In this document: positions 6,389-44,653 of the stretch, piece by piece | How the letters are laid out: each line of letters opens with the position of its first letter | How positions within the stretch are numbered: position 1 is the first letter of the stretch | Sequence record: MH460460.1 | Length of the DNA stretch: 64,000 nucleotides | Direction: 5' to 3' (one strand) | The notes under the pieces: model-generated | What the model saw: the letters and a program-made list of their open reading frames with translations, nothing else | Told to the model about the DNA's origin: nothing | The model's database searches: none | Translations under genes and position numbers: made by a program

Positions 6389-6390
6389 GT

Positions 6391-27864: not shown

Positions 27865-28389
27865 TTATTTACGATTTGTAGCAAACTTTCCGGTTTCTTT
27901 AAACGACAACCAATCACGCCATAAATACACAACACGTTTGTTTTGCCTTAAAGCATAATCCACGCAGTTCTGAGTTCCAGACGGCGCACCGCAAGCAAGA
28001 GCAAACAGCGTATCAGCTTCATCAACTATTTTCTCATTTCGAAAATTAAGTGCGAAAGCAGGGTTATCGATCAACTCAAAAGTTTCTTTGTCGATGCACA
28101 CACGAACTTCACTACTACGATTTAAGATACCGTCGAGTTCGAAAACACTTTCAACAGGCCATCGCGCATTAAAACCCAAATACGGAATCATGCTGATTAC
28201 CTTGTGTCCTTGCTCAATCGCAGCGGTCGCTATCGCCTGATCGAATCCAAGAGCGCATCCTTGCACTATCGTTACATCGGTATCCAACTTCAATAAAATT
28301 CTATGCGCGAACCGATACAGCTTTTTCTTAGCGCATGGAGTAAACCCTCCAAGTCTGTTTGGTCGGTGTCCAGTAAATCCGAGAATCAT
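27865..28389 (-). CDS. YspA/DUF1273-like SLOG family protein
   Basis: GFTGHRP, QGCALGFDQ, RNEKIVD, SGTQNCV motifs. Confidence 0.8.
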   Translation of the reverse strand: MILGFTGHRPNRLGGFTPCAKKKLYRFAHRILLKLDTDVTIVQGCALGFDQAIATAAIEQGHKVISMIPYLGFNARWPVESVFELDGILNRSSEVRVCIDKETFELIDNPAFALNFRNEKIVDEADTLFALACGAPSGTQNCVDYALRQNKRVVYLWRDWLSFKETGKFATNRK

Positions 28390-28435: not shown

Positions 28436-30400
28436 TTACAGGTAGCGTTTCAGCATTTTAATCGTAAAGTCTACGTCGCCCTCTTCACCGATGAAAGTTG
28501 CAATCGGCACATTGGTTTTCGGATCTTCTGAAACCTCTGCGCGAACGTCATAATCGCGAGCGAATTCATAGACACTATACCATTCACCATCTTCTTCAAA
28601 TTCAATGTCGTCACGTTTGCTTGTGAAGCGCCCATTAGGAATTTCAATTGATTTGGTGGTAGGCGGTGCGGGTTCCGCTTTCTTTTTCAAATACTGAATA
28701 AATGAATCTGCCGATGTGGTTTTATCAAAGCAAACAAACATAGGAGTGTTGCCGCCTGCCTCAAGAGAGGAAACCAAAAGAACAGGATTCGGATTATATT
28801 CATCCATCCAATCGAAAAGATCTGACTGCATCGAACGACGCTCGCTATAAGTATCAGCGCCTAGATCGTAGAACGTGAATTCCGCAATTGTTTTATCCGT
28901 AGGTTTAACTAAGAATTCCCAAATGGCATAAAACGTTTTAGGAACAAATTTCTTCGCCTTCTTGAGAGAAGCCAGAGTTGCATACTTGCCATGCAATTTC
29001 GACATTGCATAGTATATTTTGAAATAATAAACACTGGTTTCATCAGCAGACTCTAAAACTTCACTCCTGCTATCTTCGCTACAAGTGCGAGCAAGAATCA
29101 TCCAGAAAGTTACTTCCGGATCATTTGAAAAATCTGCCAACTCTGTAGCGATGTTCAAAACCTTCGCCGCATTCTTCTCTTTATCCAGAAGACGTTCGAT
29201 AAGATAATCTGTTTCGCCTGACTGCAAAAACTCTTCAACAGGAATCGCTTCATGCGCTGTCCGGATGGATTTAAAATCCTGACGTGCTGCAAGAGTTTTC
29301 ATAATCTCATAGGCAAGATACTTATACTTTTGTTTTTTGAATTTAGAGAAAGCGTCACGCAACAAAGAATCTTTTTGCGGATTCTCTTCTATCGCCCTGA
29401 CCCAAAACTCATAGGCTCTAGGAACCAGCTTAGAGATATTCTTATATGAAATTGCCGCAGGAATCTTTTTAAAGAGTTCCATTGCAGAATCATCAGTTGC
29501 GTGCATACCTCCAACGCGAGAGTTACGCGCTTTAGCCGCTTTCTCTTTCGCATCATAAAGTTTATCCAGCGCCGCATCCAGTTTGTCCATTCCAAGCAAG
29601 GCGAGTTTTGCGATACCTGTAATTGCAAAATCCCCATCGCCGTCATGATACAAATCTTTCTTGCGTGTGATGATTGAAGGAGAAGACGATTTATCGGTAA
29701 TAACGTTGATGTTTTCGTCTACCCACTCCTGAACTTTTCGCACAAACAGAGTATCTTTCGCGTCCGGATACGCAACTTCGGCAACGTAGCGGAACGAAGA
29801 TCCGTTTGAGTTCACGAATTTTTTCATCAGCAAACGCATGATAGGTTTGTTGATGTTCTTATCGTCGGCGTTTACCAGATAAGCAATCAGCGTATTGGCT
29901 TTAACGTCCTTAACGATATACTTCTTATTGCTTCCATCAACAAGGTTCATGCAGCTTGTCCAGCCGCGATCCGTACTCATACCAGCCACATCATAGGGGT
30001 GCATGGAAAGGCAAACGAGTTTATCACCTTTCGCAGCCGTAACAATCTGACGGCGATTCGCATCGTTATCAAAAAGTTTTTTCAGTTCAGGCTGTTTAGA
30101 TAAAACTTTGCCGAGACGTTGCACACGATCATGGCGATCTTTTACCGTACCTGCCGCATAGTCCAGAAGTTCGAAATTGTTTTCACGAAGGAAAGCGGCA
30201 ATAGGTGACGGCACATGAGAATCAGGAACGCGAATATTACGCTCAACCGCATAGTCAAAATAAATGCGGTACGCTTTCTTGCCGCGCTTATGAGATTGCT
30301 GTTCGAATATCTCCAGCAATCTCTGATCAGGTTTCCAGCCACGCATATAGTTTCGATACTGCGAAGGCTGCAAGGCACTAATGCTGACTACTGTTTTCAT
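28436..30400 (-). CDS. Hypothetical protein, paralog A (HPYD..GMST.RGWTSCM domain)
   Basis: First ~200 aa clearly homologous to 30397..32184. Confidence 0.7.
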   Translation of the reverse strand: MKTVVSISALQPSQYRNYMRGWKPDQRLLEIFEQQSHKRGKKAYRIYFDYAVERNIRVPDSHVPSPIAAFLRENNFELLDYAAGTVKDRHDRVQRLGKVLSKQPELKKLFDNDANRRQIVTAAKGDKLVCLSMHPYDVAGMSTDRGWTSCMNLVDGSNKKYIVKDVKANTLIAYLVNADDKNINKPIMRLLMKKFVNSNGSSFRYVAEVAYPDAKDTLFVRKVQEWVDENINVITDKSSSPSIITRKKDLYHDGDGDFAITGIAKLALLGMDKLDAALDKLYDAKEKAAKARNSRVGGMHATDDSAMELFKKIPAAISYKNISKLVPRAYEFWVRAIEENPQKDSLLRDAFSKFKKQKYKYLAYEIMKTLAARQDFKSIRTAHEAIPVEEFLQSGETDYLIERLLDKEKNAAKVLNIATELADFSNDPEVTFWMILARTCSEDSRSEVLESADETSVYYFKIYYAMSKLHGKYATLASLKKAKKFVPKTFYAIWEFLVKPTDKTIAEFTFYDLGADTYSERRSMQSDLFDWMDEYNPNPVLLVSSLEAGGNTPMFVCFDKTTSADSFIQYLKKKAEPAPPTTKSIEIPNGRFTSKRDDIEFEEDGEWYSVYEFARDYDVRAEVSEDPKTNVPIATFIGEEGDVDFTIKMLKRYL

Positions 30401-32184
30401 TGTTCATCATCCATCATAACTAATGCAGCATCAAGAATACTTTCTTCCACTCCGAATCTCAGATCTTTTTCGGTTTGAGGAATCGTAGGGTAGAAAATCA
30501 TTTTGCCGTGTCCGTCTTCGGTATAACCAAAGTTGAACACATCTGCGCCCTCTTTGAGAAGTGAAGGGAAACGCGGATCATCGGCAACACGACTGCCTGC
30601 ATTGAATTCGTTATCCACTTCAAAGTAAGCCGCGAGTTTCTTACGCGACTCTTCCGACATTTTGCGCATGATTACCGTAATAACATACGAGCCGATACTA
30701 ACCTCGTAGTTGGAATCAGGTGACTTAGATAAGTACAGCGCTTTTAATTGGTACTCACTGCGACGGAAACTAACGGCATGATCGATAACATATGCCATAG
30801 GGATCACGTCTTCGAATTCTTTCATTGCTTCCATGAAAGATTGATCGGTCTTCGCGCTATAACCTTCACCAGCCATATCTGCAATTGCTTCCAAAGCAAC
30901 TTCGGGATCGCGAATGTAGTTTTTGCGAATAAACAAATCAACAAACATTTTCACAATGCGATAGCGAGAAGAAAGTTTCTCGCGAGCAAAAGGTGCCCAC
31001 ACGCCAAGCGAACGAGACAGACGGCGAACCATACTGCCGATAGATTTATTCATGCCGAATACTTTCGCGCCCATTTCAGATTGCTGCAAAATAACTTGCT
31101 GCAATACGATGGATGCAAATACTTCACGCTCACTGCGAATAGCAAAAGCGGCAATGCGTGCCATCATAAGTTCAAAATCACGCGCACTGAACACTTCTTT
31201 AAATGCTTCGAGGATGGTAGCCAGAACTTCTGAATTAAGTTCGTGTGGGCTTTCCATTCTTTCTTGCGTGAAGATCATTCCAAACAGTTCATCTTTAAAG
31301 CGACGAGCCAGAAGTGACCACTGCATATCGCTAACGACGGAAAGAGGATGTGTAGAAAGAATATTTTTAACCTCAACCGGATTGCTTTCTGCGTAGCTCA
31401 ACTGAGGGAAAATACTTTCGCGAGTATCGGAATAAAGATCTTCGTGGATACGATAACGATACTCCAGCGACTCGCCTCCGAGAAGTTCTTTATTGATTTT
31501 CTCGTCAACGAAACTCTGAACACTCTCGATGAACGGAAGGTTAGGTGCCGGATAAACACGCTCAACGTGATAAATGAATTTGGATTTTGTTTGTTCAGAA
31601 TAGAAACGTTTAATCAGAACACGACTCAACGGACGTTTGATATCACGGTCGGTTGTGTCAACGAGATATGCAATCAGCGTATGCTGTTTTACATCGTCAC
31701 GCACAAACGCTTTGTTGATGCCATCGACTAGATTCATGCAGCTAGTCCAACCGCGCCCGGTACTCATTCCCGCAACGTCATACGGGTGCATACTCAAGCA
31801 GATAGATTTCTTTCCGCGAGTAACTTCAACCAGAGCTTTACGTGATGGATCAGTTTCGAAAATCTTTTTCAGTTCCGGATCTTTTAAAACTTTACCCAAG
31901 CGCATGATGCGATTGTGTTTGTCCTTCACCGTGCCTGAAAGATAGTCCTCAAGCACAAAACCCTTCTCAATCAAATAATCTTTGATTTCAGAAGGGCATT
32001 CAGGCGCGAAAGTTTTAATCAATTTGTCAGACTGAAAATCGAAGTACAGTCGCATAGCTTTTCTGCCAGTACGACCGCTGATTTTCTGAAAGAGTTGCAG
32101 CATTTTAGGATCAGGCCGCCACATCTGCATGAACGGTCGATACTGCGAAGGAGTCAATGCACTTAAACTGACTTCGATTTCCAT
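30397..32184 (-). CDS. Hypothetical protein, paralog B (HPYD..GMST.RGWTSCM domain)
   Basis: First ~200 aa clearly homologous to 28436..30400. Confidence 0.7.
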   Translation of the reverse strand: MEIEVSLSALTPSQYRPFMQMWRPDPKMLQLFQKISGRTGRKAMRLYFDFQSDKLIKTFAPECPSEIKDYLIEKGFVLEDYLSGTVKDKHNRIMRLGKVLKDPELKKIFETDPSRKALVEVTRGKKSICLSMHPYDVAGMSTGRGWTSCMNLVDGINKAFVRDDVKQHTLIAYLVDTTDRDIKRPLSRVLIKRFYSEQTKSKFIYHVERVYPAPNLPFIESVQSFVDEKINKELLGGESLEYRYRIHEDLYSDTRESIFPQLSYAESNPVEVKNILSTHPLSVVSDMQWSLLARRFKDELFGMIFTQERMESPHELNSEVLATILEAFKEVFSARDFELMMARIAAFAIRSEREVFASIVLQQVILQQSEMGAKVFGMNKSIGSMVRRLSRSLGVWAPFAREKLSSRYRIVKMFVDLFIRKNYIRDPEVALEAIADMAGEGYSAKTDQSFMEAMKEFEDVIPMAYVIDHAVSFRRSEYQLKALYLSKSPDSNYEVSIGSYVITVIMRKMSEESRKKLAAYFEVDNEFNAGSRVADDPRFPSLLKEGADVFNFGYTEDGHGKMIFYPTIPQTEKDLRFGVEESILDAALVMMDDEQ

Positions 32185-32194
32185 GATTAACCTC

Positions 32195-32566
32195 TTACGC
32201 TTTCACTTCCAGTTCGTGATCGCCGCTGTTCCAAATAAGTTCGCGAATATTGCGCGGCATAATAATGCAACCGCTCGAAGCGGTTCCGGGATTCTTGACG
32301 CTATCGCCGTGAATCTGGAAAGCACTACGACCGAACATTTGATTTTCTTTCGCCGGAGAAAGATCCATCGCATACGGGCCAGTCTTCTGACTTGTGCGCG
32401 GAGCGTTAATTGTGTAGCGACCAATCGGAAGTGGCCCTTCACCAACAACAGCAGTATCGGCAACAACATTTTTGTGTTTACCTTTTCCGCTATAACCAGT
32501 CGCAACGCGCTTCCCGTTTTTATCCAGCATTTCACCGGACGTAATATGATAAGTCCACATCAACAT
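32195..32566 (-). CDS. Tlde1/DUF2778-like L,D-transpeptidase-fold protein
   Basis: GYSGKG...GEGPLPIGRY...FGRSAFQIHGD...ASSGCII, with the H...SxGC catalytic motif. Confidence 0.8.
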   Translation of the reverse strand: MLMWTYHITSGEMLDKNGKRVATGYSGKGKHKNVVADTAVVGEGPLPIGRYTINAPRTSQKTGPYAMDLSPAKENQMFGRSAFQIHGDSVKNPGTASSGCIIMPRNIRELIWNSGDHELEVKA

Positions 32567-33129
32567 TTACCTCTATAGCGAAGATAGTTTTGCAGACAGC
32601 AAAAAACTGTCTCTTTAAGTTTATGTTCCATCTGCGCATCTTTTTGGGAAGGATCTCGCAAGCAAACTTCTACTGTTTCACGCGCCCAATCTACCGAAGC
32701 CCAATCCACATCAAACATCCAACCGAATCTTTCATGCCAATCGCGAAGAATGTCATCCAGATCTGGAGTACGATCAACGCCTAAATCAGAAAGAGGATAA
32801 ATCAGAGAATAAAGTGGAGGGGGTGCAGATAGGCTAGTGCCTGCGCCGTCGAATTTATCGAAAGCCTTTTGCACATGCCAGAGAGTTTCTTCGGTGGAGA
32901 GTGGTTCAACTTTTCGCAGCACATATTTATTTGCCGACAAACCAGCTTGCGCAAGAGTAGCACGGCAAACAACATTGTCGCCTTCATCATTTATGTACGC
33001 GAAAAGATATTGCGTGTTGCCGATCTTTCGAGAAGCAACAACACGCACATCCAGCTTTCCACGATTCAAAACTTCTTGCAAGGCACGGTTGCTTAATGCC
33101 GCCGAGATAGAAACTAAAATCTCCATCAT
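32560..33129 (-). CDS. Hypothetical protein with N-terminal ILVSISA tag
   Basis: 189-aa ORF in operon. Confidence 0.65.
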   Translation of the reverse strand: MMEILVSISAALSNRALQEVLNRGKLDVRVVASRKIGNTQYLFAYINDEGDNVVCRATLAQAGLSANKYVLRKVEPLSTEETLWHVQKAFDKFDGAGTSLSAPPPLYSLIYPLSDLGVDRTPDLDDILRDWHERFGWMFDVDWASVDWARETVEVCLRDPSQKDAQMEHKLKETVFCCLQNYLRYRGKC

Positions 33130-33144
33130 TGCCTCGCAATAGTT

Positions 33145-34173
33145 TTATTTACCTGCGTTGGCTGTGATGCCTTTCGCCGCTTTCAGGTAGTTGCCTGTAG
33201 AGAGTTTGGAACCTTTGACAGCTTCGATGGATTTAACTGCTTTCGCAAGTTTCGCCGCCAGAGATTTCAGAGTTCCGCGAATGGTTCCGCGACCAGCACC
33301 GGGAGCGCTATGAGTCAGTTTGTATTCGCTGCCTTCTCGTTTCAGAGTTGCTTTGAAACCTTTAGACTCAAACTGAATTTTATCGCCAGCCGCTTTCAGA
33401 GTGGAGTTTTTGCCAGTCACGTTTTTAGCAATCGCGTTGATTGCCTTCATATGAGATTCCGGAACAGATTTAGAAATCTTCACATTTTTATTTGCGGTAG
33501 CAGCTTTCTTCGCACGGTCAGCGGCTTCCGTTGCGCGACCACGTTTAGAAAGTTCGTCTTCAACGTCAGTCAACCAACCGCTGTCTTCGTCTTTCTTATC
33601 AGCGGCTTTGCCTTTACCTTTTCCTTTGATGGCTTCGCGTGCTTTAGCGATTTCGCCACCAGTGGAATTTTTGGCTTTTTTGGTTTTGGTTTTGCTGGCA
33701 AGCTGATCAAAAACAGACTGGCTTGGAGCACGAACCAAAGTAACAGGTTTCGCAACGCCTTTAACTTTCAGAGTTGAGCCAACAGAAATTTTTGCAAATT
33801 TCTTCGCATCAAAAAGATCCGGAGCGCTGAAACCAAACGTAGCTTTGATGCCGAAAACTTTACGCAGAGCTTTGGATGCAGCAGACATTGCCTGAGTAGC
33901 CGCAGTTTTGCAACGGCGCACTTCCGGCTGCATTGTAGCAATGCGAGTTTTGCGTGCATCAGAAGGTTTCGCTTTCTGAGCTTCGCGCAGTTTTTCGAGA
34001 TTGGCTTTGGTTTTGTGATACTTGCTCGCTTCTTTATAAGCGGTTTTAGCCAGCTTAAAAGCAGCAGCAATATCCGGGCGCAGTTTGGACAAAAACATGA
34101 TCTTCGTGTTAGCGCCTTTACCGATAACTTGCCACGACGGAGCGACAGCAGACAGGCTGAGAATCACTTTCAT
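33145..34173 (-). CDS. Basic K/A-rich protein with N-terminal VILSLSA tag
   Basis: 342 aa, strongly Lys/Ala-biased. Confidence 0.7.
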   Translation of the reverse strand: MKVILSLSAVAPSWQVIGKGANTKIMFLSKLRPDIAAAFKLAKTAYKEASKYHKTKANLEKLREAQKAKPSDARKTRIATMQPEVRRCKTAATQAMSAASKALRKVFGIKATFGFSAPDLFDAKKFAKISVGSTLKVKGVAKPVTLVRAPSQSVFDQLASKTKTKKAKNSTGGEIAKAREAIKGKGKGKAADKKDEDSGWLTDVEDELSKRGRATEAADRAKKAATANKNVKISKSVPESHMKAINAIAKNVTGKNSTLKAAGDKIQFESKGFKATLKREGSEYKLTHSAPGAGRGTIRGTLKSLAAKLAKAVKSIEAVKGSKLSTGNYLKAAKGITANAGK

Positions 34174-34175
34174 TT

Positions 34176-34643
34176 TTATTTTACCTTAACAGCTTTTGCT
34201 GCATCGAATTTTTCCTGAGAGACAAACTTGAACGCAACCAGTTTGCCCAATTTCCCAACGCGTGCCGTAGGTTTACCCGGCTTGTTGATAACCGAATAGG
34301 AAAGACCAGCAACTTTGCGTGCAGCGGAAACTTCGGACTTCAAATGCGCAAGTTTTTTATTGTCTTCCTGAATTTCTGCTTTCAGTTTAGCGCGGCGGGT
34401 TTTCAAACTCTGCTTACCGTCCGGAGTTTTAGCGGCTTTGATTTGTGCCGCCATTTTAGCATAGCGCTCTTTTTTAGTTTTCAGGGCGTTGAATGCTTTG
34501 TTACTTTCGGTACGCGCTTTCAGATAGGCTTCAAACATTGTTTTAACCAAAGGGCTTACCAGAATGCTTTTGCCGTCGAATTTGTATTTCGAACTAGCGG
34601 AAGTCGATTGCTGTTCAACCGACAGATCAATTTCTACAATCAT
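34176..34643 (-). CDS. Basic K/A-rich coiled-coil protein
   Basis: 155 aa; N-terminus MIVEIDLS...STSA. Confidence 0.65.
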   Translation of the reverse strand: MIVEIDLSVEQQSTSASSKYKFDGKSILVSPLVKTMFEAYLKARTESNKAFNALKTKKERYAKMAAQIKAAKTPDGKQSLKTRRAKLKAEIQEDNKKLAHLKSEVSAARKVAGLSYSVINKPGKPTARVGKLGKLVAFKFVSQEKFDAAKAVKVK

Positions 34644-35215
34644 TTTGTTACTCCAACATTAGCAGTGATATTAACAACACGGTTGAACCAACCATAAATA
34701 TTAGATTCTTGCGACTCATCTTTAACAGCGATGTTGTACAGGAAAGCAAGACGCAATCCATTATACACACGCGCAAGGATTTTAACGTCACGCACTTTGC
34801 AATACGATTCCAAAGCGGCAAGAGTCTTTGGCCCGATGTTAGCGGCGGGTGCAAAATCCGGATAAAGTTTCTGGCGGTCATTCAGAACGTTCAGCAAACC
34901 TTGAAGCGGTTCGATTGCATTTGCGGGAGACGAGTTAACAGCGAAATCGAAAACCCATACAGCAAGTTCTTCGCTGAACTTAGCAAGCTGATCGCATTTG
35001 CACATATCCCAAAAGTTTTTACGATAGATTGCTACCGCTGTTTCTTTCGGTAAAGTTTCCATGCTTCCAGTGTAGCCAAAATCACGCGCAGTTTTCTCGA
35101 TGATTCCCCACCGAGTTGCTTTGCCCCGATCCGTGGCACGGTTCGTAAACTTACTGCCGCCTTCACGTCCAATAACTTCTTCAATTGCCTTTTCAGCAAG
35201 ATTTGCAGTAGCCAT
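34640..35215 (-). CDS. Endolysin, glycoside hydrolase family 108 with PG_binding_3 domain
   Basis: REGG...DRGKATRWGI catalytic motif; AIYRKNFW; C-terminal GWFNRV. Confidence 0.9.
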   Translation of the reverse strand: MATANLAEKAIEEVIGREGGSKFTNRATDRGKATRWGIIEKTARDFGYTGSMETLPKETAVAIYRKNFWDMCKCDQLAKFSEELAVWVFDFAVNSSPANAIEPLQGLLNVLNDRQKLYPDFAPAANIGPKTLAALESYCKVRDVKILARVYNGLRLAFLYNIAVKDESQESNIYGWFNRVVNITANVGVTK

Positions 35216-35263
35216 AATATTTTCCTCTCCTTGCAGGATAGAAGAAAATTAGCATTAGAATAG

Positions 35264-35290
35264 AAAAAGGGCAGCACAAGGCCACCCTTT
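35264..35290 (-). terminator. Rho-independent terminator (repeated family)
   Basis: AAGGGTGGC-CTTGT-GCTGCCCTT plus U-run. Confidence 0.8.
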
Positions 35291-35294
35291 TAAA

Positions 35295-35618
35295 CTAAAT
35301 GAACTTATAGATTGCCAGTGCTGTAGCGCCTTGAAATAAACCGATATCCAACACATAAAACTTTTTATAGTGCGAAGGCATGTCGTCACACAAATACGCG
35401 TACAGATAGAATAGCCCAATATTCAACAGCGCAGACACAACGTAAAAAATCATTTCCTGCGATTGTGTGTTGAATGCCGGAACATAACTCAACGACAGCA
35501 GAAAACTTATTGCGAGCGCAATTGAAATTTTTGGATTGTTGCGAAAGTCAGACAACTCACATCCGATAACCACAACAATGACAGCCATCCAAATAAAATA
35601 CTCTGTTTCGAGAGTCAT
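35295..35618 (-). CDS. Small multi-pass membrane protein (holin candidate)
   Basis: 107 aa with 3-4 hydrophobic segments next to the endolysin; separated from it by a terminator. Confidence 0.5.
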   Translation of the reverse strand: MTLETEYFIWMAVIVVVIGCELSDFRNNPKISIALAISFLLSLSYVPAFNTQSQEMIFYVVSALLNIGLFYLYAYLCDDMPSHYKKFYVLDIGLFQGATALAIYKFI

Positions 35619-36331
35619 TAGATTCCCTGATTGGCGACCAACTCATCAGTGACGTTAGCAATTTTCTCAACGTTACCTTTGATGTATCCAAGTTCAAAAA
35701 TCTGAACACGATGTTTGATAACCGCCTGCCCCATCGTCATACACGTTCCATTATTCAAATCAATAAAGGCATCGCGCAGACGATATGTAACAGGTTTTTC
35801 CAGAATAGAAATTAGCTTCGCCATTGTACTATTGCTGATTCTCAATTCAAGAGCTTCAATCTCTTCCCGAATGTCAGTAACGCAGCCGCTGTAAATCCAT
35901 TTGCAAATCGTGTTAGTGATAGGCTTTTGGTGAGTTTTACTTGGCATAGTATAAATGAAAGTCATCAGGCTATAGAACAAACTTCCTTCTATCGCACGCT
36001 GTTTTAAATCTTTCAGATACGATCCAACGGGAACAACTCTAGGCCGAGTAGGTTCGATTTCCTGAACAGGCTTATCGACTTCCAGACCGTATTTTTCCAG
36101 CAGCGTGCTATGACCAAACACAAAGAAAATGTGTTGAGGCATTTGACGAATACTCACCGCGTTACGGTCAAATTCTTTTGTCCCGACAACAAAAATATGT
36201 TTGCGGTATTGCTTATCAGGATCGAGTGCAATTCCTTGAGGGCAATATGTCACACGAACTTTAGGATCTTGCGAACGCAACCACGCAAACACCTGTTCCG
36301 GACTTTGCTGAGTTACAGCAATCACTGGCAT
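35618..36331 (-). CDS. Hypothetical protein
   Basis: 237-aa ORF. Confidence 0.65.
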   Translation of the reverse strand: MPVIAVTQQSPEQVFAWLRSQDPKVRVTYCPQGIALDPDKQYRKHIFVVGTKEFDRNAVSIRQMPQHIFFVFGHSTLLEKYGLEVDKPVQEIEPTRPRVVPVGSYLKDLKQRAIEGSLFYSLMTFIYTMPSKTHQKPITNTICKWIYSGCVTDIREEIEALELRISNSTMAKLISILEKPVTYRLRDAFIDLNNGTCMTMGQAVIKHRVQIFELGYIKGNVEKIANVTDELVANQGI

Positions 36332-36333
36332 TT

Positions 36334-36585
36334 TTATTTCCCCAACGCATTCTTGATTTTAACAACCATTTCCGGATGAGCGATAATAACGTCATGCACC
36401 ATATAAACTTTATCCGATGGAACACTGACAGTATTAGAAGTTTTCAGCCGGAATATTTTCGCAACGATTTGCATAAAGCGATTGCGCTGTACAGGAACAA
36501 CTTTGCTTTCAGTGAGCAAGGGATCAGAAATGATCCGATAACCCTTAAACAGAACAGGGTTATCAAGAATGCTTTGAACGCTCAT
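36334..36585 (-). CDS. Hypothetical protein
   Basis: 83-aa ORF coupled to sbcC. Confidence 0.6.
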   Translation of the reverse strand: MSVQSILDNPVLFKGYRIISDPLLTESKVVPVQRNRFMQIVAKIFRLKTSNTVSVPSDKVYMVHDVIIAHPEMVVKIKNALGK

Positions 36586-38885
36586 CAGATTTCCTTCTTA
36601 GTAAGGACTGAAATGCCTTTGGTCTTTTCGACTGTCCACTGCTTGTCAGAAAATTCTTCAACAGGCTGCGGAGTAAGCCAATAGATGTTAGGCACTACAC
36701 GTTTCAAAATTGGTAAGAAGTTTTCGATCAAGTGATCGCGAACAGCAGGACTACAGTTTGATTCCGGCTCATCCAGCACAATGAAATCAGGTCGGCGGTT
36801 TTCCGGAACAAACGGAAGAATACTTATCGCCCACAACAAACGGAAGCAGTTTGTTTCTGCGCCGCTCATAATACTGAAATCAGTTGTGGTTCCATTACTC
36901 AAACGAGTTACTTCCGCACCGATACCTTGAGGACAAGTGAACAAGCGCCACTGCATAGGTTCCGGATAAACAAGGTGGCTGTTCTCGTTTAGTTTATCAC
37001 TGATCAATTGGAGACGACCTTCCATCGCTTCAAGTTTCAACGCGGTGCCACTGTATGCTTTATAAAGCGTTTCGTACAGCACGCGCTTATCAATCAACGG
37101 TTGGAGTTTTGAAAGTTTGGTACGCAGATCAACAAGCGTATCTTCGTAGTGATCGTATTCCTGAACTTTTGAAATAACTTTCTGCGCACTGCGCTCAAGT
37201 TCGCCGATCTGCGAAGTGAGTTCTTTAATCTGCGCATCAACGCTATTGTATTCCTTTTCAATTTCCTTCGCGCTTTTCGAAGGTTTCTTGAATGCTTTCA
37301 ACGACTGATTAAGATCGCGGAATTCTTCGAGTCGGGCAATACGCTTCTCGATATTCTTGCACGGTCTTTTCGGTTCGTGAACTTGTTCCGGCTTCTCCAG
37401 AGATTCCAGCTTAACAAGAATAGCGTCGCGCTTCTTGATAGTCTCAAACTCTTCGGCGATAGCATCAATCTTCGCACTGACTTTCTTCAAGCGCTTTTTC
37501 AATTCGTCTTTGTCGTGTTCTGGTTTAGAAACTTTGTTCTTTTCCAGATCGCGCAATTCAGATTTGATTTCGTAATACTCTTGCTGAGAGCGAATATCTT
37601 TAATCAGAGTTTCCGCTTTATCGGCAGCGCGTTTCATTGCACGCAGGTCAACGTCCTGTCCACACGTAGGGCAAGTTTTGCCGTCAACCTTATGAGAAAG
37701 TTTTTCGTAAGCACGAATGATACTCTGCGCTTCTGCCAATTCCTCATCCAGTTCTTCGGATTTTTTCTTTGGCTTTTTCAGTTTGGAAAGTGATTTGGTT
37801 AAACGCTTAACGTCGTCCTTCCATTCCTGATACGCTTCGAGTTCTTCTTCGATGGTGTTTAGAAGTTCTTCAATCTCTTCCTCTTCATCAACAAGCTTCG
37901 AATGCTTTTTAGAAAGCGCTTTCGGATCAGCTTCGGATTTTGGAAGTTCTTTTAGTTCTTCTCTCAGTGCTGCATGACGCTTGCGATATTTTTTGAGTTC
38001 AGCTTGATAGTCTTCAAACTTCTCAATCTTACGCAGGATACCTTCGAGATTTTTCAATTCCTTTTTCGGATTATCAGAAACAACACCGAGCTTTTCAATC
38101 TCAGAAAGAATGTCGTAATAACGACGAGCATCTTTTCGTTCGGACGTAAGTTCTGCGAAACGTTCATACAGTTCGTTGCGCTTCTCTTTAAGTTCGTCGC
38201 TTTTCTTCACAAACTTTTTCGCTTTCTTGCGCGTGTCGTCTGTTACTTTCAATGCTTCTTGTTTTCGCGCAGTCACATCATAGATATCTGCTACGCCTTT
38301 GCTTTCCTTCTCCGCATCTTTGGCAGCGTCCAGTTTCAATTTGACTGCGGCACGAATACGATCATAAACATCCAGACCAAACAACTCTGTCAGATATTTA
38401 AGACGTTCAGCAGGCTTCGCACGCTGGAAAGGGTGAGGCACTTGCGTTTGAATATAGCAGTAACTATAAAACTCATCCGGAGAAAGAGGAAAGTGTTTTT
38501 TGATCCACGTCTTCGCAACGTCCTGACGATCAACTTTCTGGTCTTCGCCGTTCAGATAAACTTTATATTTGCTTGCCGTCTGTTCAACACGCACCAGACC
38601 ACCAAGCGGAGATTGCCACTCAAGAGTTATCGAACTTCCTTTCTTGAGCATGTTTGTTTTGCTGCGCTTTGTAAGAGCAAGTGGATCTGCTTCGTACAAT
38701 AAATTCGGCAGCGTGCCAAACATCAAACTTTTACCGACGCCGTTTTTATTATCTCTTACGTTCGGGCTATCGTTGTTGATTCCTGAAACAGTTACGAAAC
38801 CTTGTTTGTCCAGATTTTTGAGTTCCAGTTCCTGATACACAACAACGTTTTTTAACTCAATACTCTTTAGCGAGATACCGGGCAT
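36585..38885 (-). CDS. sbcC: SbcC/Rad50-like SMC ATPase
   Basis: Walker A NGVGKS, zinc hook CPTCG in a coiled coil, signature MSGAE, Walker B VLDEP. Confidence 0.92.
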   Translation of the reverse strand: MPGISLKSIELKNVVVYQELELKNLDKQGFVTVSGINNDSPNVRDNKNGVGKSLMFGTLPNLLYEADPLALTKRSKTNMLKKGSSITLEWQSPLGGLVRVEQTASKYKVYLNGEDQKVDRQDVAKTWIKKHFPLSPDEFYSYCYIQTQVPHPFQRAKPAERLKYLTELFGLDVYDRIRAAVKLKLDAAKDAEKESKGVADIYDVTARKQEALKVTDDTRKKAKKFVKKSDELKEKRNELYERFAELTSERKDARRYYDILSEIEKLGVVSDNPKKELKNLEGILRKIEKFEDYQAELKKYRKRHAALREELKELPKSEADPKALSKKHSKLVDEEEEIEELLNTIEEELEAYQEWKDDVKRLTKSLSKLKKPKKKSEELDEELAEAQSIIRAYEKLSHKVDGKTCPTCGQDVDLRAMKRAADKAETLIKDIRSQQEYYEIKSELRDLEKNKVSKPEHDKDELKKRLKKVSAKIDAIAEEFETIKKRDAILVKLESLEKPEQVHEPKRPCKNIEKRIARLEEFRDLNQSLKAFKKPSKSAKEIEKEYNSVDAQIKELTSQIGELERSAQKVISKVQEYDHYEDTLVDLRTKLSKLQPLIDKRVLYETLYKAYSGTALKLEAMEGRLQLISDKLNENSHLVYPEPMQWRLFTCPQGIGAEVTRLSNGTTTDFSIMSGAETNCFRLLWAISILPFVPENRRPDFIVLDEPESNCSPAVRDHLIENFLPILKRVVPNIYWLTPQPVEEFSDKQWTVEKTKGISVLTKKEI

Positions 38886-38887
38886 AG

Positions 38888-39088
38888 TTACATCCAGACG
38901 TGAGCAGGTTCGTACCAGAGATTATCGTTCGGATAATCCTTCGCAAGTTTTTCCAATTCCTTTTCCGGATCGGCAAACACCTGACTTACGATTTCTTTTT
39001 CGTGTTCAGGTTCATGCGTGTAAGGATTGATATCAATCGCATGGCGGCAGATGTGAAAGCAGGGGATTTGTCGTGTAAGTGAAAACAT
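38888..39088 (-). CDS. Hypothetical protein
   Basis: 66-aa ORF; AAACTGTAAA motif variant upstream. Confidence 0.55.
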   Translation of the reverse strand: MFSLTRQIPCFHICRHAIDINPYTHEPEHEKEIVSQVFADPEKELEKLAKDYPNDNLWYEPAHVWM

Positions 39089-39143
39089 AATGAATACCAG
39101 AGTTAATTAAACCTATATCCATATTTTTACAGTTTTAAACGTG

Positions 39144-39170
39144 AAAAAGGGCAGCAAGTGCCACCCTTTT
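39144..39170 (-). terminator. Rho-independent terminator (repeated family variant)
   Basis: AAGGGTGGC-ACTT-GCTGCCCTT plus U-run. Confidence 0.8.
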
Positions 39171-39408
39171 ATTTCGGAAGTTCCGTGAAAAATTCATCGC
39201 CGTTATAATAGCCATCAAAAAGAAATGGCCCGGTTACTGCTTCGAGTTTAAGTTTCTCTTTTAAAAGTTTCATATAGCGTTCGCCATATGCACCTAAGTC
39301 AGCAGGCCATTTACGCGCCGTATCATCGACGTAACAGAGGAATGTATAATCCCAATTTTGTTGTGCGAGATTAGGCGCGTTGGAAAGCGAAACAAGAATT
39401 TGCATCAT
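39169..39408 (-). CDS. Small protein with N-terminal ILVSLS tag
   Basis: 79-aa ORF, RBS AAGGTG. Confidence 0.6.
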   Translation of the reverse strand: MMQILVSLSNAPNLAQQNWDYTFLCYVDDTARKWPADLGAYGERYMKLLKEKLKLEAVTGPFLFDGYYNGDEFFTELPK

Positions 39409-39421
39409 TCACCTTCATATT

Positions 39422-39856
39422 TTATCGACGGCGCTTTTTCCGCTTGATGGTGGATTTAGGCAATTTGATTTTCTTCATTGCCTCGCGTGCATCGGAGATT
39501 TGTTTACGCAAACTAGCTCGACGTTCTTCGATAGCTTTTTTGTTTGCATCGGTGACTTCCGTTTTCTCCAGTCGCTCAAGTTCATTGATCAAACGATCAA
39601 CTACTCCAGCGCGTCCGACTTTTTGTTGCTGGATGCGTGCAATATCAGTAGCGCGACGGCGAACCTTTCCACGCTCTGCCAATTCCTTTCTAGCGCCTTG
39701 CACATTACGCTGATTTTCAGTGGCGTCCTGTAGATTATCACGCGCCAACTTTTCACTGCGCTGCGCCTTCTTCACGTTGTCCTTAGCATTTTCCAAAACC
39801 ACTTTCTGTTCTTCGAGAGGGCTTTTCATTTTGCTCAGACTAATGAGAACTTGCAT
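39422..39856 (-). CDS. Basic coiled-coil protein with N-terminal VLISLS tag
   Basis: 144 aa, R/K-rich, C-terminus KRKKRRR. Confidence 0.65.
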   Translation of the reverse strand: MQVLISLSKMKSPLEEQKVVLENAKDNVKKAQRSEKLARDNLQDATENQRNVQGARKELAERGKVRRRATDIARIQQQKVGRAGVVDRLINELERLEKTEVTDANKKAIEERRASLRKQISDAREAMKKIKLPKSTIKRKKRRR

Positions 39857-39858
39857 AG

Positions 39859-40536
39859 TTACTCCAGAATATTTTCGGTACGCGGTTTAAACGTTCCTTT
39901 GTTTCCGATTGCAGATTTGATTTGCGTAGGAGAGAACACAACATAGAAAAAGTGTTCGCCACGTTTCGCAATGATTCCATCTTTCCCGGTTGCGGCTGCA
40001 AACACTTCCGGGAAGCGCCACGATTCCGGCTCACCTGCGTAGATATCATGAAACAGATTATTGCCAGCGGTAATAACATCCATGCCAACAAAGTTATCGA
40101 GATATTCTTTCTTCGCGTTCGCCAAACCTTGATATTCAATATCGTAGTTTTGTGCGAGAAACTCATTGAAGTGAGGACGAGTTAAACCGTTTGCGATTTT
40201 GAAAGCCTGCGTGTAAGTAAGGCGCGGCGGCTTTTCGAAAATGATCGGCTTCGTGATTTTCAAATAGACGGGCATTGTGCTTCCGCTATCTTTGGTATAG
40301 TACCGAGCGAATTCAGGACTATCCGTGAAATAAAATCCAATGCCGTATTCGTCGTTGCCTCCACCCAAACGCTTTTTATCGAAGGTGTCGAAATTTCCCG
40401 GCGTGCCATGATAGACAACGAGCGGATTACCTTGCGGATCTTTGACAACTGATTTTCCAAACCACTTGTCGAAGGCTGCTTGATCTTTTGAAGTGAAGGC
40501 CGAAATAGGCTTCGACAAACTTATTAGAAGTTCCAT
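39859..40536 (-). CDS. ART-PolyVal-like ADP-ribosyltransferase-fold protein (start revised to ATG 40536, MELLISLS)
   Basis: FDKWFGKSVVKDPQGNPLVVYHGT...GIGFYFT...PVYL...DGI...VVFSPTQIKSA matches the ART domain of phage polyvalent proteins. Confidence 0.75.
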   Translation of the reverse strand: MELLISLSKPISAFTSKDQAAFDKWFGKSVVKDPQGNPLVVYHGTPGNFDTFDKKRLGGGNDEYGIGFYFTDSPEFARYYTKDSGSTMPVYLKITKPIIFEKPPRLTYTQAFKIANGLTRPHFNEFLAQNYDIEYQGLANAKKEYLDNFVGMDVITAGNNLFHDIYAGEPESWRFPEVFAAATGKDGIIAKRGEHFFYVVFSPTQIKSAIGNKGTFKPRTENILE

Positions 40537-40555
40537 CGCTAAATCCTTAAAAGAG

Positions 40556-40578
40556 AAAAGCGGGAGCAATCCCGCTTT
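40556..40578 (-). terminator. Rho-independent terminator
   Basis: AAAGCGGGA-TTGC-TCCCGCTTT plus pyrimidine run. Confidence 0.75.
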
Positions 40579-40656
40579 GGAATAAAGTTTCGGTAGCTCG
40601 TACCTACCGCCGAAGTTTTACTTCTTGGCGGTAAAGAAGAGATAAGGATCACCTCC

Positions 40657-41136
40657 TTACTGACCGTAGATCCTACGGCTTGGATACGACTTCATGCGAT
40701 CAACGCCGGGAGTAACTGCCAGCGTTTGATAATAATCTTCCAACGCATCAACGTTAGGAAAGAACACCAGTTGATCTTTCATCTTACTCCAAACAAGATA
40801 CGAAAGTTTTCGGTTATCACCTTCAATCGCCAGATAGAAATCACCTGCGCCGAAAGGCGTTTTAACAGGCATAGGCTTCATGAAGTTTACGAAATCGCTC
40901 GCTTGTTTGAGGACACGATCATTGTAGATACAGATTACCCCATCCTCGCCGGAAGGAACAAAATGCAACTCACCAGTGCGCGATTTAAGCATTCCAATTG
41001 GAGATTTTGACGTGTCAACATCTGCACCGAAAATCTTCTTACACATATGCTTGATTTCAAGCGGATTCAGGTGCTCAGAATAACGCGTCCACAATAAGTC
41101 TTCCGAGACTTTTGAAAGGGAAAAGACGATTTGCAT
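40657..41136 (-). CDS. Hypothetical protein with N-terminal IVFSLS tag
   Basis: 159-aa ORF. Confidence 0.65.
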   Translation of the reverse strand: MQIVFSLSKVSEDLLWTRYSEHLNPLEIKHMCKKIFGADVDTSKSPIGMLKSRTGELHFVPSGEDGVICIYNDRVLKQASDFVNFMKPMPVKTPFGAGDFYLAIEGDNRKLSYLVWSKMKDQLVFFPNVDALEDYYQTLAVTPGVDRMKSYPSRRIYGQ

Positions 41137-41215: not shown

Positions 41216-42436
41216 TTACTTCAACTTGATTGAAAGTTTCCCGGAATAGATATCCGACATTAAACCAGTGATCGTACTTTCAAACATCACCTCAACCGGA
41301 ATACTGGAAGAGTTGATCGCCAATTCGATATCACACAACGCTTTCTGCAAATAGATGATTGCGATTGGTTCGATATTGAATTTTGCTTTCTTGCGGTTAT
41401 CGTTGAACTTACGCAGTTCCGCAGTTTGGAACTTGTTAGTCTTCGCGATATCGCCGAGAATGTAATGCAAAAGCCAACGCGACTTATGAAGCAGGCCACG
41501 AATATCGGCAGCGTTACGCACGGTACGAATGATTTCGATGAGATCCATTTTGAGATAACCAGTAATGAAATCTACCGCCATATCTCCTAAGTTGATTTCC
41601 GGATCGCTTGCCGCCATATCCAGAACCAAATCAGTATTGAATTCTTCACCGCCTTTAACCGCAGAATAAACGGTCTGGAATAAACCGATTGCACCGCGCA
41701 ACTGACCGCCAGAATATTCAGCGATGGTGCGAATCGCAGCACGCGCTTCTTTGAGTTCCTTTTTGTCCTTCGGCAGAATCTTTTCTGCTTTGGCAATAAA
41801 CTCAATGCGCTCTGCAATCACGTCCGGATCAATCGGATTGATTGGCAACTTAACGCAACGAGAAAGAATCGTGCTCTTAATCTTTTGCGGATCAGTTGAG
41901 ATTAAAACCCAAATGGTATGCGGTGCTGGATTCTCAAGAGGAATAAGGAATTTACTTTCCGCTTGTGAAGTCATCAAGTGCGCTTCATCGAGAATGTATA
42001 CGCGACGGCGATACATCGGGCTTAACGTGCTGCTTTCGATGATGCGTTGCGAGCCTTCAACTTTACCGCTATCGTTGCCCATATCGTAGGTAAGAATATC
42101 CGGATGGAAACCGCTATCAAACGCTTTGCACGATGGACATTCACCGCACGCGTTTAGCGTATCGCAGTTCACCGTTTTACCGATGATGTTACCGAACGTT
42201 GTTTTACCGGAACCCAAATGCCCGCTGATCAAAACAACACTTGGGAAAGTTTTAGTTTTCAACCAACCGCGATATTGTTTGTGGATGTGTTCTTGCCCGA
42301 TGAAATCTTCGATGTTCTTCGGACGATATTTGTTTGCGAAGTTAATCGTGTTGAGATCGAGCAACTCACTTGTTTTCTTTTTCTTCTTTTTCTTTGTGTC
42401 TTTGTCTTCAATGATACGGCGCTTTGCTTTGGTCAT
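41216..42436 (-). CDS. dnaX: DnaX-like clamp loader AAA+ ATPase (gamma/tau-like)
   Basis: KYRPK, GHLGSGKTT, C...CGECPSC zinc module, ILDEAH, SRC motif. Confidence 0.9.
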   Translation of the reverse strand: MTKAKRRIIEDKDTKKKKKKKTSELLDLNTINFANKYRPKNIEDFIGQEHIHKQYRGWLKTKTFPSVVLISGHLGSGKTTFGNIIGKTVNCDTLNACGECPSCKAFDSGFHPDILTYDMGNDSGKVEGSQRIIESSTLSPMYRRRVYILDEAHLMTSQAESKFLIPLENPAPHTIWVLISTDPQKIKSTILSRCVKLPINPIDPDVIAERIEFIAKAEKILPKDKKELKEARAAIRTIAEYSGGQLRGAIGLFQTVYSAVKGGEEFNTDLVLDMAASDPEINLGDMAVDFITGYLKMDLIEIIRTVRNAADIRGLLHKSRWLLHYILGDIAKTNKFQTAELRKFNDNRKKAKFNIEPIAIIYLQKALCDIELAINSSSIPVEVMFESTITGLMSDIYSGKLSIKLK

Positions 42437-42472
42437 TTCTGAATTCCAGTTTGAGGGATCGTATACAGGGAA

Positions 42473-42482
42473 TTTACAGATT
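42473..42482 (-). promoter_or_regulatory. Phage promoter motif AATCTGTAAA (representative copy; others listed in findings)
   Basis: Exact 10-mer recurring 9 times, always on the sense strand shortly upstream of a gene. Confidence 0.75.
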
Positions 42483-42487
42483 TGATC

Positions 42488-42532
42488 AAAAAAAAAGGAA
42501 GAACCGCCGTAGCCTTCGGTTCCTCCTTACAG
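42488..42532 (-). terminator. Rho-independent terminator closing the structured element
   Basis: AGGAGGAACCG...CGGTTCTTCCT followed by a long U-run. Confidence 0.8.
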
Positions 42533-42778
42533 GGTAATAATGAATCGCTCTTTATAGTTATGGGTAAACTCCAAAGAAACCTTTTCGAGTCTCTTTGGAG
42601 TTTACCCGCCGGGCTGTCGGAACCCATTAGATAAACTCCCCCGCAGATTAAAGTGCGATAGCGGGATACGCACCGGGCGAGTCTTACTGTCAGTGACCTG
42701 CCCGTGTCATTCACAAGGCCAATGCACGCTCGCCGCTCCACAACGAACCTTCCTGCGAAAAGTTCTTGTAGCGTGAGT
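42530..42778 (-). ncRNA. Candidate structured non-coding RNA of unknown class
   Basis: Gap between genes with a 16-bp perfect hairpin, two further long stems and a predicted H-type pseudoknot; several mismatches are G-U wobbles only on the minus strand. Confidence 0.5.
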
Positions 42779-43354: not shown

Positions 43355-43686
43355 TAATGAATCCTTGTAGGGAAAACAAACGGAATGCCAGAAATCATTC
43401 CGAGATTAAAATTGGCAGTCTTCGCATGGTGGCGAATCGTATCCGAGTTTGTAACTTTGTGAATATCTTCACCGTTAGTAAACTTGAACGAGATTTTTAC
43501 CGGAGAGTAAGTATCGGTTTCCGTGTTGTATAGATGAGGATCTAAAATCCAGATTCCATCACCATAATCAGCAAGGCAACCAACGAAAATCATTCCCTCC
43601 GCTTCGTACATTGCGAGAGGACTATCCAGCGTAATAGGGAAGACTTGATTATCTTCCCCTTTCCGATTCAGTTCGTCAATCAACAT
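43354..43686 (-). CDS. Hypothetical protein (start revised to ATG 43686)
   Basis: Short overlap with the upstream stop. Confidence 0.55.
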   Translation of the reverse strand: MLIDELNRKGEDNQVFPITLDSPLAMYEAEGMIFVGCLADYGDGIWILDPHLYNTETDTYSPVKISFKFTNGEDIHKVTNSDTIRHHAKTANFNLGMISGIPFVFPTRIH

Positions 43687-44653
43687 CCCCGCGAAACTCC
43701 TTGACTGTAAGGCGAACCGCTTTGTTGAGAGTTTTACCCAAATCAATTCCTTGAGCGAATCGACTGAAACTATAGGCGAATAACGCACGCGCACTTTTCA
43801 TCGCCGACTTATCAATGTCCGGACGCGCATCACTCACTTCAAGTTCCGCAGGCCAGAATTTTGCAATTGCTTCGCTATCGTTCTGCGCAAGCAATTCCAG
43901 TTCTTTTACGCTCATTACTCGCTGGCGTGCAATGCTACGCAAAATGATATCAGTGAATGGAAGAAGATCTTCCGACACTAAATTTTTCACGTCCTTTGCA
44001 TCGCCTGCTTTCAGGAAGTCATCGAGAAAACCGATAAGCGTTTCTTGATCCAGTTTCTGAACGTTACGCAATTTGTTCAGCAAAAGAATCCATTTGATTT
44101 TGCGCTTGGTGGGAACCAAATGCTGATAAATACTTTCGCCCAATGCCAGCAACATATTGTTGGTAACGTCTTGCGAAAGACTATCTTTGTTCACGCAAAT
44201 GTTGAATGAATCGTGCCATTCTTCTTTTGCGAATTTGGTTTTGAAGTCATGTGTTTTACTGCCGCCGGAAACCTGATTGAAATTGATTTCTTTGCAGCGA
44301 CGCAGCGCTTCACCAACTCCATACTTCTCAACGTAGGAAGGAAACTTTTTGCAGGCAATACGAATAGCCTTGCCTACTTGTTCTTCACGTCCGTAAAGAT
44401 TTAAAGCAGGCATACCAGAAATTTGTTTCAATGCGACGTAAGGAGTAATGCCTACGCCGAAAACTTTTTGCCCCGGTTCCGGATCTTTGCCGAGAATCGC
44501 GAGTATGTCATACTTGGCGCTGAATTTAATTGTTGTTGGTTCCTCTGACGAAAGTGTATTCACCAGATAGCCAACAGTTTTTCCAGTCGCCAGAACAAGA
44601 ACATTTTTGTTGCCGCTGCGAACAACAATATATTCACCTGCACGATGTTTCAT
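43676..44653 (-). CDS. Hypothetical protein
   Basis: 325-aa ORF. Confidence 0.65.
   Translation of the reverse strand: MKHRAGEYIVVRSGNKNVLVLATGKTVGYLVNTLSSEEPTTIKFSAKYDILAILGKDPEPGQKVFGVGITPYVALKQISGMPALNLYGREEQVGKAIRIACKKFPSYVEKYGVGEALRRCKEINFNQVSGGSKTHDFKTKFAKEEWHDSFNICVNKDSLSQDVTNNMLLALGESIYQHLVPTKRKIKWILLLNKLRNVQKLDQETLIGFLDDFLKAGDAKDVKNLVSEDLLPFTDIILRSIARQRVMSVKELELLAQNDSEAIAKFWPAELEVSDARPDIDKSAMKSARALFAYSFSRFAQGIDLGKTLNKAVRLTVKEFRGDVD

Follow-up and report, generated by a model that had tools for sequence, protein, structure and literature searches.

The stretch of DNA analysed here (the window, 64,000 nucleotides in all) matches bases 124001-188000 of the genome of Dickeya phage vB_DsoM_JA13 (MH460460.1, 254,061 bp, genus Salmondvirus) with 100% identity, and positions below are those of the window unless the record is named. 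Nine of about 323 JA13 genes, all nine of them inside the window, encode proteins that open with a common eight-residue leader, M-x-[IVLT]-x-[IVLF]-S-[LI]-S. The leaders coincide with the annotated coding sequence (CDS) starts of JA13_176, 177, 179, 180, 188, 189, 190, 191 and 211 (products gp176 and so on), and begin at 30400, 32184, 33126, 34173, 39405, 39856, 40536 and 41136 on the minus strand and at 58550 on the plus strand. The nine genes are as follows.

28436-30400, minus strand: JA13_176, 654 amino acids (aa), leader MKTVVSIS at 30377-30400; belongs to a jumbo-phage family that is widespread and whose mature start, AL.PSQYR, is conserved.
30397-32184, minus strand: JA13_177, 595 aa, leader MEIEVSLS at 32161-32184; paralog of gp176.
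32560-33126, minus strand: JA13_179, 188 aa, function unknown, leader MEILVSIS at 33103-33126.
33145-34173, minus strand: JA13_180, 342 aa, Lys-rich and basic (isoelectric point, pI, 10.4), leader MKVILSLS at 34150-34173.
39169-39405, minus strand: JA13_188, 78 aa, acidic, leader MQILVSLS at 39382-39405.
39422-39856, minus strand: JA13_189, 144 aa, pI 10.8, 28% Lys plus Arg, leader MQVLISLS at 39833-39856.
39859-40536, minus strand: JA13_190, 225 aa, ART-PolyVal ADP-ribosyltransferase, leader MELLISLS at 40513-40536.
40657-41136, minus strand: JA13_191, 159 aa, function unknown, leader MQIVFSLS at 41113-41136.
58550-58951, plus strand: JA13_211, 133 aa, low-complexity, pI 4.2, 32% Asp plus Glu, leader MNVLISLS at 58550-58573.

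We tested the motif on the full JA13 proteome and not on the window alone. Taken as a 7-mer without its Met, the leader occurs about 33 times at 75,450 internal proteome positions, and the composition-based Poisson probability of at least nine leader starts is about 3e-13. A six-frame scan of the whole genome with the relaxed pattern M.[IVLT].[IVFLM][ST][LIV][ST] in open reading frames (ORFs) of at least 40 aa returned 11 matches, namely the nine gene starts and two in non-coding frames, with none elsewhere in the other 190 kb. A position-specific scoring matrix (PSSM), which was trained on the nine tags themselves and matches them by construction, gave these tags 18-23 bits, compared with 5.8 bits for the next best JA13 start. 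Eight of the nine leader genes lie within 12.7 kb. A first-pass annotation of the window had listed nine shared N-terminal tags; all nine are present at annotated CDS starts, and the enrichment scan of N-termini that it had proposed, when run on the whole proteome, gave nine occurrences against 0.15 expected from the internal frequency at the approximately 327 N-termini. We conclude that the leader is strongly non-random.

The codons used for the leader vary. Ser6 and Ser8 are encoded by a mixture of AGY and TCN codons (AGT, AGC, TCT, TCG, TCC and TCA) and Leu7 by CTG, CTT, TTG or TTA, and pairs of tags with an identical residue use the identical codon in only 17% of cases, which argues that the leader is selected at the protein level. 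The upstream regions of the tagged genes have only a ribosome-binding site in common; with codons that differ so freely, a DNA- or RNA-level repeat is ruled out. An all-against-all BLASTP comparison of the nine proteins (E up to 1) detected no similarity past residues 1-9 except between gp176 and gp177 (52% identity over 233 aa). This result rules out an ordinary paralogous gene family, and agrees with the earlier statement that the proteins are unrelated after residue ~9 apart from one paralog pair. The protein types named in the first-pass annotation were likewise recovered: gp190 matches ART-PolyVal (Pfam PF18760) at E 2.4e-27 over residues 33-216, the basic proteins are gp180 and gp189, and gp211 is acidic. 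In addition, gp180 has a weak LPD3 match, and the phrog_30142 alignment of gp211 begins at residue 1. No Pfam family and no PDB sequence match was found for gp176, and its AlphaFold model had no fold match in the PDB, the matches being to uncharacterised viral proteins only.

The AlphaFold model of gp176 (63 homologs) has a mean predicted local distance difference test score (pLDDT) of 90.3, with residues 1-7 below 50 and the first helix starting at residue 12. That of gp190 has a pLDDT of 82.4; in it, residues 1-5 fall under 50 and secondary structure is absent up to residue 10. In both models the leader is not part of the predicted fold; the acidic, low-complexity composition of gp211 makes an ordered domain that includes the leader unlikely there as well. 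When 35 tags were pooled, including metagenomic ones, position 1 was Met and position 6 Ser in all 35, position 8 was Ser in 33, positions 3, 5 and 7 were aliphatic, and positions 2 and 4 were free.

The leader is retained among relatives. In Erwinia phage Y3 and Yersinia phage fHe-Yen9-02, the orthologs of gp179 (Y3_195, MKIFVSLA; Yen9-02_089, MRISISLS), gp189 (Y3_205 and Yen9-02_100, with the leader retained at 47% identity) and gp191 (Y3_208, MEIFVSLS; Yen9-02_102, MRIFVSMS) are 27-47% identical overall and keep M-x-I-x-[VI]-S-[LM]-[SA]. The long-leader proteins Y3_194 and Y3_187 align with gp180 at the S-x-S↓A boundary (here and below the arrow marks the boundary between the leader and the mature start). 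We then considered the best 150 gp190 homologs from a search of 1.8 billion representative proteins. Of these, 122 are polyvalent proteins of at least 1000 aa, and among the matches listed those to giant proteins set in at about residue 6-29 of the query, mostly at 14-21, whereas six of the eight standalone homologs (~220 aa) carry the leader. The leader is portable, then, because the ART core occurs without it in giant polyvalent proteins and with it in most standalone homologs. Three metagenomic jumbo-phage contigs, found via gp176 homologs, each have a cluster of leader-bearing genes, whose products include ART-PolyVal (twice in one contig), SprT-like and weakly ATLF-like proteins, gp176 paralogs and topoisomerase I.

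Pseudomonas phage Lu11 belongs to the same phage group but is more distant (PMC7412058). At least 14 of its genes, mostly adjacent, start with M-K-I-Q-L-A-V-A, which has the same architecture with Ala replacing Ser, and this set includes three gp176 paralogs, topoisomerase I and one head-module gene. The topoisomerase I leader reads MNVHIAVA↓A in Lu11 (5481-7166 of locus L014) and MKSNLLSIS↓A in a metagenomic contig (6118-7788 of L021); from these sequences, topoisomerase may be packaged in some relatives.

The gp176 family connects the JA13 leader to a cleavage site of known function. We sorted 120 family members by the three residues preceding the conserved mature start AL.PS.YR, and found S-x-S in 75 (leader mostly 8 residues) and x-x-E in 36, mostly [L/I]-x-E (leader 8-9 residues). 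The S-x-S and [L/I]-x-E endings occupy the same aligned position, directly before AL.PS.YR. On a 333-kb T4-like contig, one Glu-type member has Gp23, Peptidase_S77 and Portal_T4 genes as neighbours. The T4 prohead protease gp21 cuts at L/I-X-E, the motif in which the 10-19-residue N-terminal capsid targeting sequences of T4 internal proteins end (PMC9026906). Two gp176-family members have a longer leader that still ends in E-S-x-S before ALKPS, indicating that the length of the leader varies and that its boundary is fixed. As judged from these alignments, the form of the leader is specific to the lineage: S-x-S in JA13-like phages, A-x-A in Lu11 and [L/I]-x-E in T4-like phages. The earlier description of a portable tag on unrelated proteins is therefore borne out in that the leader lies outside the predicted folds, is retained in orthologs, occurs on standalone ART-PolyVal proteins and varies with lineage.

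Ralstonia phage RsoM2USA has a gp176 homolog, ORF132, with a computed mass of 76,624 Da. [quoted passage not shown] The ORF132 leader, MKTFKQFLNTLME↓AL (Glu-type, MKTFKQFL..E), is found on ORF89 (MKTFKQFLSE↓S) and ORF81 as well (14031-14792 and 5329-5868 of L023, respectively), which indicates that RsoM2USA, a T4-like jumbo phage, has its own multi-protein leader family.

The S-x-S ending is also seen on a giant protein encoded in the window.

12978-18812, minus strand: JA13_164, 1944 aa, SNF2-type helicase-like giant, short leader MQIFSTS↓A at 18792-18812.

SNF2 and Helicase_C domains are present in gp164. The leaders of its family vary (MQIFSTS, MNQMISTS, MFLSES, MSELSVS), and S-x-S always precedes a conserved [AK]TATQQIA; the Lu11 homolog has ...PLAAA↓V. 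The homolog in phage PaBG, a relative for which virion data exist, is gp202 (detected by tblastn), which starts MGSLFTLNSLS↓AA and is the Coomassie-visible virion band 1 (PMC7412058 Table 1). In most of 120 capsid protein homologs, the N-terminal segment ends in L-S-x-S, followed by a conserved TGE[IVF]NA; the boundary is LSES↓TGE in JA13, LSSS↓TGE in PaBG and LSSA↓TGE in Lu11. The tblastn matches of more distant capsid proteins (phiRSL1, Motura, BCSR5) start at JA13 residue 32-34, at the S-x-S↓TGE boundary. The PaBG capsid protein is processed, with a reported mass loss of about 20% (PMC7412058). A bacterial assembly entered as Salmonella enterica serovar Infantis includes, on a ~267-kb contig, a capsid protein with 71% identity to the JA13 one (P0143), and by this match a phage of the JA13 group is probably present there.

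The candidate head protease is JA13_132 (gp132), which matches only phrog_18299, annotated 'head maturation protease'. The JA13 and PaBG head proteases themselves start with M-x-hydrophobic-x-L-K...S-x-S. Adjoining the head protease gene is that of gp131 (record 100883-101929, minus strand, outside the window; L004 4883-5929), which has a KMPT-N domain (E 7.6e-11) and a weak match to SpvD-like cysteine hydrolases (E about 1e-3); gp131 may be a second peptidase in the head module.

Based on these comparisons with relatives, we think it probable that the leader is a capsid-targeting propeptide, which the divergent head protease of the phage would probably cut after S-x-S. The M-x-hydrophobic-x-hydrophobic part would dock the new protein on the interior of the assembling prohead (scaffold or core), and the small-x-small end (S-x-S in JA13, A-x-A in Lu11) would be cut by JA13_132, freeing the mature protein within the head. 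The cargo would then exit the head with the DNA at the next infection. The proposed cargo consists of the ART-PolyVal ADP-ribosyltransferase, the two large gp176-family proteins, the basic DNA-binding-like proteins and the acidic proteins, and the 216-kDa SNF2-like gp164 is probably among them. We infer the targeting to the head, the cut behind S-x-S, the protease that would make it and the ejection of the cargo into the host. The first-pass annotation had read the tag as a sorting or cleavage signal of head-packaged, delivered effectors; the portable tag stood, and the packaging and delivery part is supported indirectly, via the virion bands of RsoM2USA ORF132 and ORF89 and of PaBG gp202.

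Several observations weigh against a capsid-targeting propeptide. The tagged genes sit among replication and lysis genes, outside the head module, and a weak variant of the leader, on gp122, sits between two tail-tube genes. S-x-S carries little information: its positional enrichment in the first 20 residues is only about 1.5-3x, which by itself is not enough to identify cleavage sites, and S-x-S-[ASTKN] is enriched there only about 2-3x across the proteome. A capsid subclade has L-D-x-[K/R] at the aligned site, which means either that the residue before the cut (P1) is not universally small or that cleavage occurs elsewhere, and the ~20% mass loss of the PaBG capsid protein exceeds the ~9% expected from the S-x-S↓TGE site. 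JA13_132 gave no match to a Pfam (including S77) or NCBIfam protease family at E up to 10, and its PDB sequence search had no useful match. The tag family is absent from PaBG, where only single look-alikes were found, and the PaBG virion list is consequently no direct test of the short leader. The RsoM2USA band assignments are worded 'most likely correspond' (PMC8504454). Finally, a literature search turned up neither a virion proteome nor N-terminal sequence data for JA13 or its close relatives (Y3; also Lu11): the JA-phage paper (Day et al. 2018) is without proteomics, and a paper on fENko-Kae01, considered as a source of virion data, concerns an unrelated phage.

Among the other explanations, the one that survives best, although we judge it unlikely, is that the leader targets proteins to the head but stays uncleaved, or is cut by an enzyme other than gp132, with S-x-S acting as a binding surface. 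Targeting and processing determinants are separable in the T4 leader (PMC9026906), and the L-D-x-K capsid subclade speaks against a strictly small P1. However, the gp176, gp164 and capsid families are conserved exactly from the residue after small-x-small, with length varying upstream of it, and the long and short leaders of one family both end in S-x-S.

Next in rank, and unlikely as well, is a stability or turnover signal (an N-terminal degron) that is read by a host AAA+ protease or by the phage peptidase gp195, with no packaging. The location of the genes among early or middle-type replication genes would suit such a role, as would the exposed, flexible leader and a conserved phage 'peptidase', gp195, about 2.5 kb from the cluster; yet PaBG has the peptidase and no tag family. 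A degron also leaves unexplained the T4 head-protease motif at the same position in T4-like phages, the virion bands of leader-bearing homologs, and the parallel change with lineage at the capsid boundary (and, between Ser and Ala, in the gp164 homologs). JA13_195 itself (43676-44653, minus strand) matches phrog_17197, 'peptidase', and has no Pfam match; its PaBG counterpart by gene order and annotation bears the name Zn-metalloprotease. The leaders could alternatively be processed by JA13_195.

We regard as less probable again a docking strand for some other machine (a sliding clamp or replication factory, a membrane or export apparatus, or a chaperone) with no capsid role. The alternating hydrophobic pattern fits beta-strand addition, and gp188-191 are encoded directly downstream of the clamp loader gp192. 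Gln is typical of clamp-binding motifs, but it is present in only three of the nine tags, and the cargo (ART, basic and acidic proteins) does not consist of replication factors, so that a clamp-binding motif is a poor fit. The small-x-small end superficially fits the -3/-1 rule of signal peptidase; nevertheless, these small residues are all that matches a Sec signal peptide, because the leader has eight residues and is followed by polar sequence, with no hydrophobic h-region. Nor does docking elsewhere explain the virion bands of the relatives, the equivalence to the T4-type site or the parallel Ser/Ala change in the capsid protein and the gp164 homologs. Very improbable, and contradicted by the data, is the absence of any functional tag (a duplicated gene 5' end, a DNA or RNA element such as a translation enhancer or recombination site, or chance): the clustering of eight of the nine genes would suit it, but it conflicts with the codon divergence, the lack of upstream conservation beyond the ribosome-binding site, the retention of the leader in diverged orthologs and on other families in separate genomes, and the excess over the chance expectation.

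The proposed capsid-targeting propeptide resembles several known systems in part. T4 packages an ADP-ribosyltransferase and small basic internal proteins, whose leader the prohead protease removes and which leave the head with the DNA (PMC9026906). As with the T4 capsid targeting sequence (on IPI, IPII, IPIII and the Alt propeptide), the JA13 leader is a short N-terminal sequence common to otherwise unrelated proteins, its proposed cargo also includes an ADP-ribosyltransferase and small basic proteins, and the distant gp176 homologs of T4-like phages have a leader ending in Glu where the alignment places the JA13 one. Unlike it, the JA13 leader has eight residues, is beta-strand-like and ends in S-[LI]-S rather than L/I-X-E, the JA13 head protease has no Pfam Peptidase_S77 match, and the capsid protein is not gp23-like but, as described by the PaBG authors, small and HK97-like (PMC7412058). 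Leader cleavage is established for T4; for JA13, packaging and cleavage are proposed. The comparison suggests that the JA13 leader works like a T4 capsid targeting sequence but differs from it in motif and protease family. In phiKZ-like phages (phiKZ, 201phi2-1, SPN3US), many head-internal proteins are processed by one prohead protease and ejected (PMC9026906). A three-residue processing motif, which for JA13 is proposed, is common to both, but in the phiKZ-like phages it is S/A-X-E, with Glu at P1 (PMC9026906), and the JA13 leader ends without Glu; moreover, the phiKZ-like propeptides are long and not common to several proteins. JA13 does not belong with them. The PaBG authors treat the Lu11/PaBG/Dickeya/Erwinia group as separate from phiKZ-like phages (PMC7412058).

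Polyvalent proteins of phages and conjugative elements, which are predicted to be delivered with the invading DNA (Iyer et al. 2017, PMC5512222), have 2-15 effector domains in one polypeptide that is cut by an internal metallopeptidase (PMC5512222). The same domains are found here, as ART-PolyVal in JA13 and as a SprT-like peptidase and SNF2 helicase in relatives or gp164. In contrast to the polyvalent proteins, gp190 is a single-domain protein of 225 aa, and the other tagged proteins are encoded by separate genes, each with its own leader; the polyvalent modules thus appear to be unbundled in JA13.

In Staphylococcus phage 80alpha, an N-terminal leader common to the capsid protein, scaffold and an ejection protein is removed by Prp, an L27-specific cysteine protease of the Firmicutes host, and the leader mimics a host ribosomal-protein extension. 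The likeness lies in a short leader common to several proteins and a conserved site at which it is removed or, in JA13, would be removed. The JA13-type motif changes with phage lineage, including on the phage's own capsid protein, which points to a phage-encoded reader, unlike in 80alpha. The heads of phage P1 package the antirestriction proteins DarA, DarB and DdrB (PMC5512222). The resemblance lies in a giant helicase-type protein carried in the virion (PaBG gp202, the gp164 homolog); the Dar proteins form a hierarchy and are not known to have a common short leader.

Weaker and longer variants of the leader occur on other genes of the window.

34176-34643, minus strand: JA13_181, 155 aa, basic, pI 10.2, candidate long-form leader MIVEIDLSVEQQSTS↓A at 34599-34643.
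12060-12377, minus strand: JA13_162, 105 aa, candidate long-form leader MTTISLKVDSVS↓A at 12342-12377; assigned by pattern only.
24404-25681, minus strand: JA13_172, 425 aa, with two S-x-S sites, L-S-A-S↓V at residues 10-13 and S-L-S↓A-K at residues 55-58.

The variants on gp181, gp164 and gp220 and the S-x-S-A sites in gp162, gp165, gp169 and gp172, all of which the first-pass annotation had pointed out, are present in the sequence. By its PSSM score of 2.0 bits, gp181 is a weak member; gp220 (62005, MKVEIDLG) lacks S-x-S, scored 5.4 bits and was not counted. Both S-x-S sites of gp172 are conserved in the Y3 and Yen9-02 orthologs. Its gene is just downstream (at lower coordinates) of those for gp173, which is basic, and gp174, an SbcD-like nuclease, and is two genes away from that for the head-to-tail joining protein gp170, and from these features gp172 is a candidate processed head-associated protein. 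Outside the window, gp72 (record 42393-42632, minus strand) starts MKTVVALAA, an Ala-type version of the leader within JA13, and gp122 (record 92292-92960, minus strand) starts MLFFVSVSA, the weak variant mentioned above; the membership of both is uncertain.

Other genes in the window deserve mention. Within the tagged cluster, gp178 (32195-32560, minus strand) resembles Tlde1/YkuD-type L,D-transpeptidases (E 5e-17), and near it are gp182 (34640-35215, minus strand), a GH108 endolysin with a peptidoglycan-binding domain, and gp183 (35295-35618, minus strand), a small hydrophobic protein; gp178 is a cell-wall enzyme like type VI secretion system effectors, paired here with lysis genes. JA13_175 (27865-28389, minus strand), annotated 'putative ssDNA binding protein', matches DNA_processg_A (DprA-like recombination mediator) at E 1.3e-7. 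JA13_200 is annotated at 47366-48220 (284 aa, minus strand), and its ORF extends to 49090. Over its residues 31-563 the long ORF matches Y3_219 and Yen9-02 117c (E 1e-98 and 2e-96), and on this alignment the record has probably cut the gene short at its N-terminal end, and the start is likely to be near 49003.

The literature that we found on the capsid targeting sequence consists of work on T4, P1, P22 and SPN3US-type phages, with none on the phage group of JA13. With less confidence than we attach to the propeptide itself, we tentatively suggest that a large jumbo-phage clade, comprising Dickeya, Erwinia and Yersinia phages of the Salmondvirus- and Sasquatchvirus-like types, Lu11 and many uncultured relatives, may use leader-coded loading, that its head protease may have switched from Glu to a small residue at P1, and that its effectors (ADP-ribosyltransferase, SprT-like peptidase, topoisomerase I, SNF2 helicase and histone-like proteins), of the kind found joined in giant polyvalent proteins of other elements, may be encoded as separate genes that each have their own eight-residue leader.

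If the leader is a capsid-targeting propeptide, the proteins that a jumbo phage delivers with its DNA, which are the first to act against host defences, would be readable from the genome sequence alone. For JA13 the list would comprise an ADP-ribosyltransferase, two 70-kDa proteins whose fold has no solved relative, basic and acidic proteins, and probably gp164, with topoisomerase I and a SprT-like peptidase added in relatives. A portable leader together with a head protease, the arrangement used by T4, would then exist beyond the T4-like phages with a different motif, protease specificity and leaders would change together by lineage, and the domains of polyvalent proteins would be deliverable one by one. 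The eight-residue tag would also be of use as a tool in phage biology, as a handle for loading foreign proteins into jumbo-phage heads, for example those of Lu11 in the harmless host Pseudomonas putida.

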